Shown piece by piece: positions 24,001-33,000 of a stretch of 64,000 nucleotides of DNA. The notes under the pieces are model-generated. The model was not told the DNA's origin. It did no database searches and was given only the letters and a program-made list of their open reading frames with translations. The DNA is taken from NCBI GenBank assembly GCA_024704765.1, contig JAKMXF010000299.1, positions 620,001 through 684,000 of the forward strand. The letters are read 5' to 3'. A program made the translations under genes and the position numbers. The DNA comes from Oopsacas minuta (taxonomy: Eukaryota; Animalia; Porifera). Every line of letters begins with the position of its first letter. The first letter of the stretch is position 1.

Positions 24001-27000
24001 TCCATGCAGTGTGCGTTCAAATCTATATTGTACATGTTCAAAAAGTGTTCAAACATGTACAATATAGATGATGTATGCGGTATTCTGCAGTCAAATCCCT
24101 ATGTATCCGGTTAGATCTTTTTGCAAATTACAGAACATTTCCGATATTATATCGCATCTACGCTTTTTCGTATTAGCAAGGGTTCAGATTATCTAGGTCT
24201 ACAGTAGGTAAATTTATCTTATCTTTCACATCTAGATAGATTATAGCTAAGTTAGTATAAATAGGAAACTAATCCTGATAAATGTATCAATCAGTACTAC
24301 TGAATACAAAGCTAGAATTTCATAATCCAATCAGGAGGTAATAAAATGACTACTAATTCGAACAATTCTATTAAAGTTATAAGGAACCACTCATTCCATC
24401 TGCACTTTTTCAAACTGCCAACACTTTGCTCTCTTTGCTCTCGTTACATTTTCGGAATAGGAAAACAGGGCTATAAATGCCAACATTGTAAATACTCGGT
24501 TCATCAATCTTGTGTAGAAAATGTTTCTTGTAACTGTTTCCTAGAAGCTGATGCCCCCTCAACAAATATTCACTCATTCTTCCCAACTTCTCGAAAGATT
24601 TCTTTCTGCGAGCATTGTGGTCAAATCATGTTCCATCTATTTAATAAGGGATATGTATGTTTGCACGAAAAGTGTCAGTTGCGGGTTCATTCTGATTGTC
24701 GTCTTCTGGCATTTCGAGAATCTTCCGAAGGATTTGACTTTCGATATGGCTTCTTGGTTCTCAATATTCTTTCTATTTCAACTGGAAGCTCTAGGATGGT
24801 ACAAATCGACGTTAAAGAAGCACACAACCTAATTCCTTCTAAGAAAAACGGTTCCTCTGATCCTTTTTGCGAGATTGTTTTAAGATCAGGTTCGCAAGTA
24901 CATGAAACATTCAAATCTGAAGTATGTGAGAATACTCTCAACCCTGTTTTTGATGATGTCATAATTTGGACAATTCCAGAAGAATCTAAACTAACACTTG
25001 AAGTATCCCTGTACAGCAAGTTGAAGAGGAAGGTAAATAGGTTTCTTGGAGGATTTTCATTGACATTAGAGGATATTGTACAGTATAGTACAGCGAAAGA
25101 TATACAGTTTGTACTCTTTAAAAGGAAACTAGCTAAATATCTGCATCATGTTTCTCCTGTCACCCCAGTTAGACAAGTTCATGAGCAGAACGACCGTATA
25201 TTGTCGATAGAAGATTTCTCAGTTATCTCCATAATTGGAAAGGGCGGATTTGGTACAGTTGTTTTGGCAGAGTTGAAAGTATCTCCTGAGAACGCATTCG
25301 CTGTCAAGGTTATCAATAAGAAACAGATAATCAGCGAAGATTTAACTGAGTCACTTTTAATAGAGCATCGAGTAGCCCTCTTGCCAAACAAGCCCTCGTT
25401 TCTTGCTGGTATGCTCGCTTCATTTCAGGACACTGAATACTTGTATATGGTATTTGATTTCTATGGCGGTGGCGATTTATTATTTCACATTAACAATGAG
25501 AGAGTGTTTCCTGAACACCGCACACGCTTTTACATTGCAGAGATTTCAATTGCTCTATTCTTCTTGCACAGTTGTGGAATAGCTTATCGTGACATAAAGC
25601 TTGAGAACATCCTTCTAGATAATGAAGGTCACATTAAACTAATTGACTTTGGCTTATGTGCTGAAGGTATTGTTAACGGACAAACTCAGACTGACACATC
25701 AGTGGGAACCTTCGAGTATCTCGCTCCTGAAGTATTGGCTAGACTTCCCAACGACTGCGGGGCTGATTTATGGAGTCTTGGCGTTCTTGCCTATGAAATG
25801 ATGCTAGGTAGATATCCATATGTATCAGATACAGATGTGGGTCTTTTGAATGAGATAAAGGAAACTAAAGTTAGATTACCCTTCACTCTGTCAGAGCCAG
25901 TTAAACAATTTCTTTCTCGTCTACTCAAGGAAGACCCAACAGAACGACTTGGCTATGACCATGAAAAAGGTTGCGAGGAGTTCAGATCTTGTAGTTTCTT
26001 CTCTGAGATCGATTGGATTAAACTTGAAAAGAGGGAAGTGAAGCCTCCTTTTGTCCCTAGACTGAGAGATATAAAATCAACACGATATTTCGAACCAAGA
26101 AATGATATATTTGAGGTTTCAAAAGATGTGTCTGAAACTAGTTTAGATCTCTCCAAGGAATTTACTTATAGCTCAACAGATATCCTCGCGCTGCTTTAAT
26201 AATAAATTTAATTATTTGCTATTAATCTATTTCACTTGAATTGTATCAGCTAATTATATGTATACTGATAAATGAATCGTTATTCCACCATCTTTGTGTA
26301 AAGAGGTTAAATAATATTTGGGTAGGTGCTACATTGCTTCGTCACTTTAATACTTTGAAATGGGATTGGGACAGTTTGACACCAAGAAAGCAATAAAGGA
26401 GAATATGAAGACAATATGGTGAATTTACCTGAATCGTGGTTCCGCAAACTTTCATTCGGCATCTCCTATCTATACAGGCATACACGCATACTCTAAGGTC
26501 CGAATTAACGGCCCCCGCTTATTAATATCGAGAATTCTTCATTGTACTGGTTGTTTTCATGACTTATTTGGATTCTATGGAATCTCTTACATCTATTTTA
26601 GATAATGTTCAGTATTTTTAGGTAGTATATCAAAGTAATTCTGTACTTTGGAGATTCTAGACCTCCTAAATATTCACCCCTCCCCATTTATTCGGACCGA
26701 TGGAGTACTTACTCGGATATGTATTATGTTAATTAATTAATTTTTAAGTAATACTCGATATTATTCTGATTATCTTTGTTGAAAGTACATCTATGTACGT
26801 AACCTCATCTGCTATGGCTTATTCGGGAGTTGTGTGGTTTACTATTATCTTACATCTCCAATTTCTTCAATACACCTTGTTTATCATCCGTCTGAATATT
26901 CAATCCAGAATGTTCATAGACACCTTGCCTTAGCTATATGACCAACCCTATCGTTATATTTAAGAAGTATATTCAGTTTTTCCAACCTTGATAACCCTCA

Positions 27001-30000: not shown

Positions 30001-33000
30001 GTGGTCTACCACCCCAGTTTTGGGCAGTAGAACTAGGATAAGTTTACTTAACTAATAGTTAGGCTATAAAATATATCAAAGAAAAACTTGAATTTATAAC
30101 ACTACATATGTCAGAATATAAAAATATATTCTTCAGATTTGTTAGAATTGTTATAGGTTAATATATTATAATTTAGATACTAAATGGAATAGTTCCCATT
30201 GAAATTTAATCGACTCTGAACATGAATCCCGCCACCCCAGATTTATCTCTTTTTTCAAGTTATGCCTATGAGCCTATGAATTGACTTCATTGAGGTCTTA
30301 CCATTGGCGTTATTCAATGCCCACAAGTTTAACTGATTTACGTAAATTCAGCTTACCTTTCGCTCTACTAAATGATATTGCATAGTAGATTGATTAGATT
30401 ATTTAGCTTACTTGGTTAGTATAAATACGAAGCTAATCCGGATATATATATCAACCAATACTACTAAATACACTTCTAGAATTTCATAACATAATCAGTA
30501 AGGTACTTAAATGGCAAATTCTTCTGACAATTCTACCCTAGCTAGACAAGTTCATGAGCAGAACGACCGTATATTGTCGATAGAAGATTTCTCAGTTATC
30601 TCCATAATTGGAAAGGGCGGATTTGGTACAGTTGTTTTGGCAGAGTTGAAAGTATCTCCTGAGAACGCATTCGCTGTCAAGGTTATCAATAAGAAACAGA
30701 TAATCAGCGAAGATTTAACTGAGTCACTTTTAATAGAGCATCGAGTAGCCCTCTTGCCAAACAAGCCCTCGTTTCTTGCTGGTATGCTCGCTTCATTTCA
30801 GGACACTGAATACTTGTATATGGTATTTGATTTCTATGGCGGTGGCGATTTATTATTTCACATTAACAATGAGAGAGTGTTTCCTGAACACCGCACACGC
30901 TTTTACATTGCAGAGATTTCAATTGCTCTATTCTTCTTGCACAGTTGTGGAATAGCTTATCGTGACATAAAGCTTGAGAACATCCTTCTAGATAATGAAG
31001 GTCACATTAAACTAATTGACTTTGGCTTATGTGCTGAAGGTATTGTTAACGGACAAACTCAGACTGACACATCAGTGGGAACCTTCGAGTATCTCGCTCC
31101 TGAAGTATTGGCTAGACTTCCCAACGACTGCGGGGCTGATTTATGGAGTCTTGGCGTTCTAGCCTATGAAATGATGCTAGGTAGATATCCATATGTATCA
31201 GATACAGATGTGGGTCTTTTGAATGAGATAAAGGAAACTAAAGTTAGACTACCCTTCACTCTGTCAGAGCCAGTTAAACAATTTCTTTCTCGTCTACTCA
31301 AGGAAGACCCAACAGAACGACTTGGCTATGACCATGAAAAAGGTTGCGAGGAGTTCAGATCTTGTAGTTTCTTCTCTGAGATCGATTGGATTAAACTTGA
31401 AAAGAGGGAAGTGAAGCCTCCTTTTGTCCCTAGACTGAGAGATATAAAATCAACACGATATTTCGAACCAAGAAATGATATATTTGAGGTTTCAAAAGAT
31501 GTGTCTGAAACTAGTTTAGATCTCTCCAAGGAATTTACTTATAGCTCAACAGATATCCTCGCGCTGCTTTAATAATAAATTTAATTATTTGCTATTAATC
31601 TATTTCACTTGAATTGTCACAACTAATTACATGAACACTAAAAGTTGAATCTTTTATTTGTAAAACTACACTCAACTAGCCTAACGGGTCGAAAAAATGG
31701 TCATTCTGGATGGGGTTGTGACCCAATTTGAGAATGGAATGTGGTTATATTCCTGAGACATTCATGCGTTGCTGGGAAAATAATTACAGGATATAACTAA
31801 ATGACTACTCGAACGACTTGAATTTTTCACTGATTACGAATATCGAAAATTCGTTTCGATTTAATCTTACAAAGTTCTATTAGGGTTGCCATCCCTCCCA
31901 GATTGAGGTTCAATTACCCGGGAATCAGCATTTCCAATCCGGAAGATTTGACAAGTCTCATGGCAGAATCATAATTCCATCTTCCAACAATTATGGATCC
32001 TCATACCTTCACAAAAATATTGGTAGTTTCTATATTTCAAGAACAGTGCTCATAAATTTTTAGCTGAAAATAGTTTGCAGATAAATCGTAATGTCACTGG
32101 AGTGTTTAAGTTTCGATCATAAATTTTGCCAAAAGGTAGAAATTCAAAATAATCGCAATAATTAAAATTGCCTCTAAGATTTCAATGAACTTCGGACTAA
32201 TCCCTGTCCCAATATTTTCAAGTTATGAATTGGTCTTATTATAACGAATTCAGGCAGATAAATCTAACGTATTACATGTTACCTTCACAATCATTTCATT
32301 ACATTTACAGCTTTGAATTTTCCAGTGAATTATGAAATCAAATGTGTCATTTGAGTAGCCCCACCGGTAAATTTCTCGTTCCTACACCCCCTGCCTTCCA
32401 CCCATAATCCTCCTCTTGGAATAGAACTGAGTGAAGTTGGCAACCTTGAGTTATATGCATTTTAAACTATTCAAATGTGTCCAAAAGTGACACTTTAAGA
32501 GGCTCAATATAGGAATGTTTAACACTGGCAGCGATCCATTGGCACAAATATTCAAATTGATAATGTGGACAAACTAAATCACCCGAAAAGAAAATATTTG
32601 GTGAAAAATCAAAGTTAGGTGTCGGCATTTGCCTGAAAACTTTGATAAACTCTCAATTCATGTTAAATTTCATAAAAGAAAATACATATTCTGTAATTTT
32701 TTAGGATAGAAAAATTCAAGGAATCAATTTTGGCTAGTTAAGCAGCTCAAACGGCCACCCTTCATCTATATTAACCGCAATTATGTGATTAAGTTAGCAT
32801 TTACACAATTCGAGTATTTTCTCAACTTTTTTTGTGGGAAAAAGGCACATTCTGTCCTAATGGATGCTAGGATTGTTGAATTTGTTTATTTACTTTACAA
32901 CGATAGCTTATCTGAAGAAACATTGAATAATTTATAATTTATACCTTGTACATGAAAAAGTATATAAATCTATTAGGAATTAATCGAAAAAAACATATGA

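Follow-up and report, generated by a model that had tools for sequence, protein, structure and literature searches.

How does a genome come to carry a gene for the bare catalytic domain of a protein kinase C (PKC) next to a full-length PKC gene with the same kinase sequence, and could such a gene yield a signal-independent kinase of the PKM type? This question is raised by a 64,000-nucleotide (nt) stretch from the glass sponge Oopsacas minuta (assembly GCA_024704765.1, contig JAKMXF010000299.1, positions 620,001 to 684,000), here called the window, to whose numbering all window positions below refer. Two genes on the plus strand are concerned. PKC-2 (24346-26199) is intronless and encodes 617 amino acids (aa) with a C1-C1-C2-kinase arrangement, as judged from the list of open reading frames (ORFs) and from Pfam, whereas PKC-3 (30511-31572) is a 353-aa kinase-only ORF, in which 8 codons of the ancestral N-terminus and 19 residues of the hinge precede the kinase domain and the C-tail. 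We consider it likely that an older local duplication, an in-frame deletion, and at least one recent gene conversion produced this pair, with PKC-2 as the parent or conversion partner, and that the PKC-3 product, if expressed, would be PKM-like and signal-independent.

The difference in length between the two proteins amounts to 264 codons and corresponds to 792 bp in frame at positions 24370-25161 (plus strand), which have no counterpart in PKC-3. Both tblastn and direct alignment place PKC-3 residue 9 on PKC-2 residue 273, whereby residues 9-353 of PKC-3 represent residues 273-617 of PKC-2. Exactly codons 9-272 of PKC-2 are deleted, which encode C1A, C1B, C2, and most of the hinge, and the PKC-3 kinase domain begins at residue 28. 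The breakpoints of the deletion share a microhomology of at most 1 base. Pfam reports only Pkinase for PKC-3 (184 bits); the tandem C1 and the C2 domains of its C1-C1-C2-bearing parent are missing, and no C1 or C2 remnants were found within 26200-39170 at E values up to 10. The catalytic motifs of PKC-3 are intact, since residue alignment to PKC beta and alpha, which are also its best solved-structure matches (E 1e-73), recovers the Gly loop, the VAIK Lys, the catalytic-loop Asp, DFG, APE, and the activation-loop Thr. Identity to PKC kinase domains of solved structure is sufficient to settle the fold. PKC-3 occupies a locus of its own, which has a separate promoter and retains the ancestral ATG, and the protein is made neither by cleavage nor by an internal start of a full-length PKC gene. 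The first-pass annotation of the window had described PKC-3 as a gene that keeps the ancestral start and jumps in frame to the kinase, 264 aa shorter; ORF lengths and alignment agree with this, and PKC-3 is an exact in-frame deletion derivative of a PKC-2-type gene.

Similarity between the two loci is distributed unevenly. Repeat finding and an ungapped comparison of 25170-26244 with 30543-31617 (both plus strand, offset 5373) yielded 1073 identical positions out of 1075. The two mismatches, at 25788 (T/A; Leu481, CTT/CTA) and 25876 (T/C; Leu511, TTA/CTA; numbering of the long gene), are both synonymous and are the very two that the first-pass annotation had named. This tract covers the end of the hinge, the kinase domain, the C-tail, the stop codon, and 45 nt of the 3' untranslated region (UTR) including the AATAAA signal (26201-26206 in PKC-2). 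There are only two copies of the kinase DNA in the 61.5-Mb genome. The flanks are homologous yet diverged, which had been claimed for the promoter/ATG regions and for about 40 bp of 3' flank and is borne out by the alignments. Between the promoter and 5'UTR regions of PKC-2 (24237-24345, plus strand) and PKC-3 (30395-30510, plus strand), 91 of the 109 aligned bases up to the ATGs at 24346 and 30511 are identical (83.5%). Within them the element TATAAATA is perfectly conserved at 24256-24263 and 30420-30427, 90 and 91 nt before the respective ATG, and in PKC-3 an in-frame TAA directly precedes the start codon. Codons 1-8 agree in 17 of 24 nt, with four of the seven residues after the start Met changed, and the first 8 nt past the deletion junction agree at six positions, giving P274L and V275A. 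Beyond the 3' end of the tract, the flanks 26245-26281 of PKC-2 and 31618-31654 of PKC-3 (both plus strand) are about 30% diverged, with ~70% identity over about 34 nt, after which similarity is lost. A further block is located ~1 kb upstream (23316-23520 and 29075-29399, both plus strand), with 76-80% identity overall and 76% for 23316-23452 versus 29075-29211, and presents a remnant of the old duplication. A search of the O. minuta genome revealed no further copy of this block, and no copy of the promoter block beyond the PKC-2 and PKC-3 loci. The old duplication unit extends over about 23.3-26.3 kb and was copied to about 29.1-31.65 kb. A similarity between 27918-28146 and 35292-35499 was considered as another part of the duplication but was rejected, since these are copies of a dispersed repeat resembling a short interspersed nuclear element, of which there are more than 1000 candidate genomic copies at ~80-87% identity.

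When the flanks are pooled, 37 of 175 positions differ, compared to 2 of 1075 in the tract (Fisher p = 4e-31), and the Jukes-Cantor distances of flank and tract are 0.187 and 0.0019, respectively. At the divergence of the 5' flank, the 229 synonymous sites of the coding tract would be expected to show ~38 differences, whereas two are observed (P = 1e-15), and the deficit persists even if a divergence of 5% is assumed (P = 7e-4). Because the identity also includes synonymous sites and the 3'UTR, purifying selection on the protein is excluded as its cause. The 5' border of the tract is found 8 nt into the homology that follows the deletion, the 3' border 45 nt past the stop codon, and since diverged homology continues on both sides, these are borders of a conversion and not of the duplication. 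What is found is thus near-identity, including synonymous and UTR sites, that is bounded on either side by more diverged homology, as is typical of a conversion tract. It could also be that the segment 25162-26281 was recently duplicated on its own, without any conversion, and that the likeness of the flanks reflects shared regulatory motifs. Orthologs in other species have a TATA-containing motif upstream as well, and some of the upstream likeness could therefore be functional. However, the upstream likeness spans 109 nt at 83.5% identity, the first eight codons, and a second unique block ~1 kb upstream, whereas the orthologous promoters of other species align at the TATA box only. Homology of 70-75% past both tract borders would not be expected of a fresh insertion, and no further genomic copies of the promoter and far-upstream blocks were found that would mark them as a mobile element. 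We regard a partial duplication without conversion as largely refuted, with a minimal residual probability.

The history of duplication, deletion, and conversion that we prefer would have run as follows. In the O. minuta lineage, a segment of ~3 kb comprising the intronless PKC-2, at least 1 kb of upstream sequence, and a short 3' flank would have been duplicated a few kb downstream. The duplicate would have lost codons 9-272 by a single 792-bp in-frame deletion and retained the TATA promoter of its ancestor together with the start codon and eight N-terminal codons, which are now joined to the kinase by the final 19 residues of the hinge. Much later, non-allelic gene conversion would have made the kinase domain, the C-tail, and the first 45 nt of the 3'UTR identical between the two genes; judged by divergence, the last conversion appears to be about 1% as old as the duplication. 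Both sides of the deletion junction consist of old diverged DNA, which suggests, on the basis of few sites, that the deletion preceded the conversion and set its 5' limit. The duplication itself is far younger than the splits from the other species, because their promoters align with those of O. minuta at the TATA box only. The earlier proposal of an older duplication that lost C1-C1-C2 stands on the shared diverged promoter, start codon, and 3' flank and on the unique block ~1 kb upstream. In contrast, its statement that the kinase halves are kept identical by gene conversion needs to be narrowed: conversion is upheld by the sharp borders within homology, but no continuous upkeep is needed, since one recent event suffices, although repeated homogenization is possible. 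The direction of the conversion could be either way. With respect to orthologs, the ratio of kinase to regulatory distance is 0.71-0.81 for O. minuta versus 0.54-0.83 among other species. The shared kinase domain has thus diverged at the normal rate of the family relative to the regulatory half, and these ratios give no sign that its sequence passed through a relaxed copy.

The closest relatives of PKC-2 are located on the ENA contigs L003, L004, and L005 from other glass sponges and are 66-67% identical to it. L003 and L004 carry, in this order, myosin, a PKC-1-like gene (693 aa), a PKC-2-like gene (612 aa), and a PKC-4-like gene on the minus strand (780-781 aa). On L005, myosin is followed by a PKC-1-like (697 aa) and a PKC-2-like gene (612 aa), and nothing was called in the 10 kb examined downstream. 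The gap between PKC-2 and PKC-4 measures 7.5 kb in the relatives versus 13 kb in O. minuta, and no kinase match was found within it in the related contigs. Protein searches that admitted candidates of 194-1080 aa revealed no kinase-only relative, and no counterpart of PKC-3 was detected in the related sponge contigs or in a search of 5.8 billion proteins. Since the relatives keep the gene order but lack a kinase-only copy, the duplicate is lineage-specific, and in the data available PKC-3 is confined to the O. minuta lineage. One candidate, P0124 (248 aa), was rejected as a kinase-only relative because it belongs to a full-length copy with breaks at three points. On contig L008 (8907-10744), a PKC-2-like gene is broken at about 9150, 9817, and 9940, which might indicate a decaying paralogue or sequencing errors. 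Contig L009 harbors two PKC-2-like genes of 568 aa each (1-1660 and 9853-11516), which are arranged head to head ~8 kb apart; this inverted, full-length pair is 98.4% identical over 1666 nt, including ~150 nt upstream. As far as these contig sequences tell, duplication and/or homogenization recurs in the PKC-2 subfamily, with the L009 pair as a second recent case.

In order to judge what the deletion removed, the regulatory half of PKC-2 has to be considered. PKC-2 aligns collinearly with C1A, C1B, and C2 of PKC beta (residues 31-288 of the latter) and with its kinase domain, and among solved structures both halves of PKC-2 match PKC beta and alpha best. The subfamily comparison comprised the regulatory regions of PKC-2 (24346-25161), PKC-1 (13867-14949), and PKC-4 (40401-41483, minus strand) from the window as well as five relatives, at about 10001-10860 of the loci L003, L005, L006, L007, and L009. 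The regulatory half of PKC-2 is conserved, with 58-61% identity to the relatives. In PKC-2 and in each of the five relatives, the 7-12 residues that precede C1A include no basic segment, and these proteins thus have no pseudosubstrate; PKC-3 has none either. The last C1B cysteine is missing in PKC-2 and in four of the five relatives, and the fifth, the L009 copy, lacks the entire C1B. Of the five C2 aspartates which, as in PKC alpha and beta, are the calcium ligands, four are replaced in PKC-2 and in all relatives and one is kept, as aligned to PKC beta. In contrast, PKC-1 and PKC-4 keep the C2 aspartates and a pseudosubstrate-like basic segment with Ala. With regard to the turn and hydrophobic motifs of the C-tail, the alignment reaches the NFD-like position and the tail ends in an F-T-Y motif, but the middle residue is T, C, N, or R among the relatives, and there is no Pfam match to Pkinase_C. 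The PKC-2 subfamily therefore appears to be a lineage derived from conventional PKCs (cPKCs) that departed from the classical control by Ca2+, diacylglycerol (DAG), and pseudosubstrate, and PKC-3 looks like the extreme of this subfamily-wide loss. Because PKC-2 is not a typical Ca2+/DAG-controlled cPKC, the contrast between a regulated parent and an unregulated copy is weaker than first assumed.

Could PKC-3 nevertheless act as a PKM-like kinase? Its predicted architecture, a hinge remnant plus the catalytic domain and nothing else, is that of a PKM, and both gene copies carry a TATA box, an A at position -3 of the ATG, and AATAAA. If transcribed, PKC-3 would yield a soluble catalytic domain without C1 and C2, which would be neither membrane-targeted nor autoinhibited. 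Elsewhere, the O. minuta genome encodes a PH domain of the PDK1 type, which makes priming phosphorylation of PKC-3 feasible, and a PDK1 encoded in this way could prime the product to give a PKM-like, signal-independent kinase. Such a constitutive activity is what we infer from the sequence. It may also be that PKC-3 differs from PKC-2 in localization more than in activity, as PKC-2 has no pseudosubstrate. The most far-reaching reading would see in PKC-3 an expressed and constitutively active gene for a free PKC catalytic domain, which bears its own promoter, co-evolves with its parent by conversion, and marks the end-point of a glass-sponge-wide erosion of second-messenger control in one cPKC-derived subfamily, with the pseudosubstrate and the C2 calcium ligands lost and C1B crippled or deleted; we put this forward tentatively and regard it as doubtful rather than probable.

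Several points speak against our account, some of which concern the DNA history and others the product. The conversion is deduced from a contrast in divergence and not from tree discordance, as no available relative carries both copies. The published genome comprises 365 scaffolds with about 61 Mb and 36% G+C and was assembled by SPAdes in hybrid mode from Illumina reads and PacBio reads that had been self-corrected, after which SSPACE, Pilon, and GapFiller were applied (PMC10280926). In a hybrid SPAdes graph, a near-identical repeat of 1 kb shares edges, and both the count of differences and the pairing of the flanks hinge on resolution by long reads. The locus could accordingly be an artifact, in which a haplotype with the deletion or a mis-joined graph path ended up in tandem, or in which polishing homogenized two diverged paralogues. 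The hybrid assembly with its subsequent scaffolding, polishing, and gap-filling steps would be compatible with this, as would the presence of another locally near-identical repeat pair within the same window. However, the flanks are 16-30% diverged, unlike an allele, and therefore a deletion allele placed in tandem is excluded. There is not a single N in the window, and the junction is PKC-3-specific on both sides, so that reads must contain it. Moreover, polishing with short reads would presumably be unable to raise an identity of ~80% to 99.8%, as such reads map uniquely, and the additional 5.4-6.2 kb match the larger gap between PKC-2 and PKC-4 in comparison to the relatives. Taken together, we judge an artifact to be very improbable.

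With regard to the product, transcript or peptide support for PKC-3 was not obtained, which is not evidence against expression. When residues 1-100 of PKC-3 served as the query in a search tuned to fragments of 55-175 aa, nothing was found, which is uninformative in this respect. The same applies to a look-up of contigs by exact protein, which was blank, and to the protein clusters, whose members were the genome's own deposited proteins only. The deposited gene models derive from Braker/Augustus, and the curation rules would have retained a model of 353 aa whether or not any RNA covered it (PMC10280926); annotation is therefore not evidence of expression. Neither is the intactness of the PKC-3 ORF informative on selection, because it was recently overwritten by conversion, and the PKC-3-specific codons are too few for a selection test (both of the two differences are synonymous, p about 0.13 under a neutral-copy model). 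The same DNA history could thus have left PKC-3 as a neutral by-product, silent or trivially expressed, whose frame is kept open by conversion from the selected PKC-2. That PKC-3 is unmatched in the related contigs and the large protein search, where P0124 proved to be only a piece of a broken full-length pseudogene, would fit this, as would the lack of expression evidence and the one-in-three chance of a deletion being in frame. The PKC-3-specific codons have also diverged like the non-coding flank (17/24 nt), with two non-synonymous changes right past the junction, but the N-terminal peptide is not conserved among true orthologs either, so that its divergence says little. On the other hand, the start codon, the TATA box, its spacing (90 versus 91 nt), and the reading frame have outlasted ~19% of neutral divergence, and since a free catalytic domain of PKC would probably do harm, its persistence suggests either silence or use. 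We take a neutral by-product to be a serious alternative for the product, albeit one with clearly less than an even chance.

In the window, the genes are arranged in the order myosin exons (3135-3563), PKC-1, a Transib element, PKC-2, PKC-3, and PKC-4 on the minus strand. PKC-1 (13867-15936, plus strand) is an intronless, cPKC-like gene of 689 aa with a pseudosubstrate-like segment and C1-C1-C2-kinase domains according to Pfam, and has an ortholog in L003, L004, and L005. PKC-4 (39174-41483, minus strand) is likewise intronless and cPKC-like (769 aa), carries a canonical-looking pseudosubstrate, and has an ortholog in L003 and L004. All four PKC-like ORFs have residue-for-residue matches in NCBI/UniRef, where they are deposited as predicted proteins. 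Since the O. minuta genome averages 1.59 introns per gene, intronless PKC genes are not odd in this species. Downstream of PKC-3, nested inverted repeats are located at 33778-34841, with arms of 110-146 nt and 86-89% complementarity; they are related to 49220-49427 and probably constitute a foldback element or one resembling a miniature inverted-repeat transposable element. Positions 44940-46001 encode an intact transposase of the Mos1/mariner type (HTH_48, DDE_3, Transposase_1), whose length of 353 aa equals that of PKC-3 by coincidence. In the myosin gene region, 3932-4190 and 8052-8311 are same-strand, non-coding copies of a dispersed repeat of ~260 nt, which are 99% identical to each other, whereas all other genomic copies are at most 79% identical to this pair; it may go back to a further local conversion or to very recent local copying.

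In the literature, as far as our incomplete coverage reaches, we found nothing on this PKC cluster or on a stand-alone gene for a PKC catalytic domain. If the most far-reaching reading given above is true, the locus would add to the known routes to a PKM a third one that is purely genomic, and this in an animal without neurons. If PKC-3 is expressed, it would be a natural experiment on a PKC catalytic domain permanently freed from lipid and calcium control, with a full-length sister of identical catalytic sequence as a built-in control. Apart from this, PKC-3 is a lineage-specific truncated duplicate, as is routine in compact, duplication-prone genomes, whose protein is already public as an unremarked prediction. 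PKC-2 and PKC-3 also offer a clean and datable case of a gene conversion whose extent was set by the loss of domains. Both processes at work here, the conversion and the loss of domains from a duplicate, are ordinary, and the locus is a tidy example of them.

Concerted evolution by gene conversion between tandem duplicates is known for globin and other small gene families. The pair shares with such tandem paralogues a sharply bounded stretch of near-identity that takes in synonymous sites and UTR and is embedded in older, more strongly diverged homology; it differs in that one partner is internally deleted, so that only the kinase half can be exchanged and the 5' end of the tract abuts the junction. 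Compared to the conventional PKCs alpha, beta, and gamma, PKC-2 shows the C1A, C1B, C2, and kinase layout of PKC beta in collinear order, but the identity of the kinase domain is only ~40%, Pkinase_C is not matched, and the pseudosubstrate, the last C1B cysteine, and four of the five C2 calcium-ligand aspartates are missing, whereas PKC-3 is devoid of any regulatory module. The known PKMs arise from an internal promoter, as in vertebrate PKM-zeta, or by calpain cleavage, as in Aplysia and other invertebrates, and their persistent activity follows from the loss of autoinhibition (PMC3517905; PMC5159657). The predicted PKC-3 product, whose expression and activity are putative, has the same architecture of hinge remnant and catalytic domain. 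However, PKC-3 is a separate gene, which originated when a duplicate underwent a genomic in-frame deletion, and neither proteolysis nor an internal promoter is involved; its ancestor was a cPKC-like enzyme and not an atypical PKC, and the parent subfamily was already without a pseudosubstrate. Its host is a nerveless, syncytial sponge.

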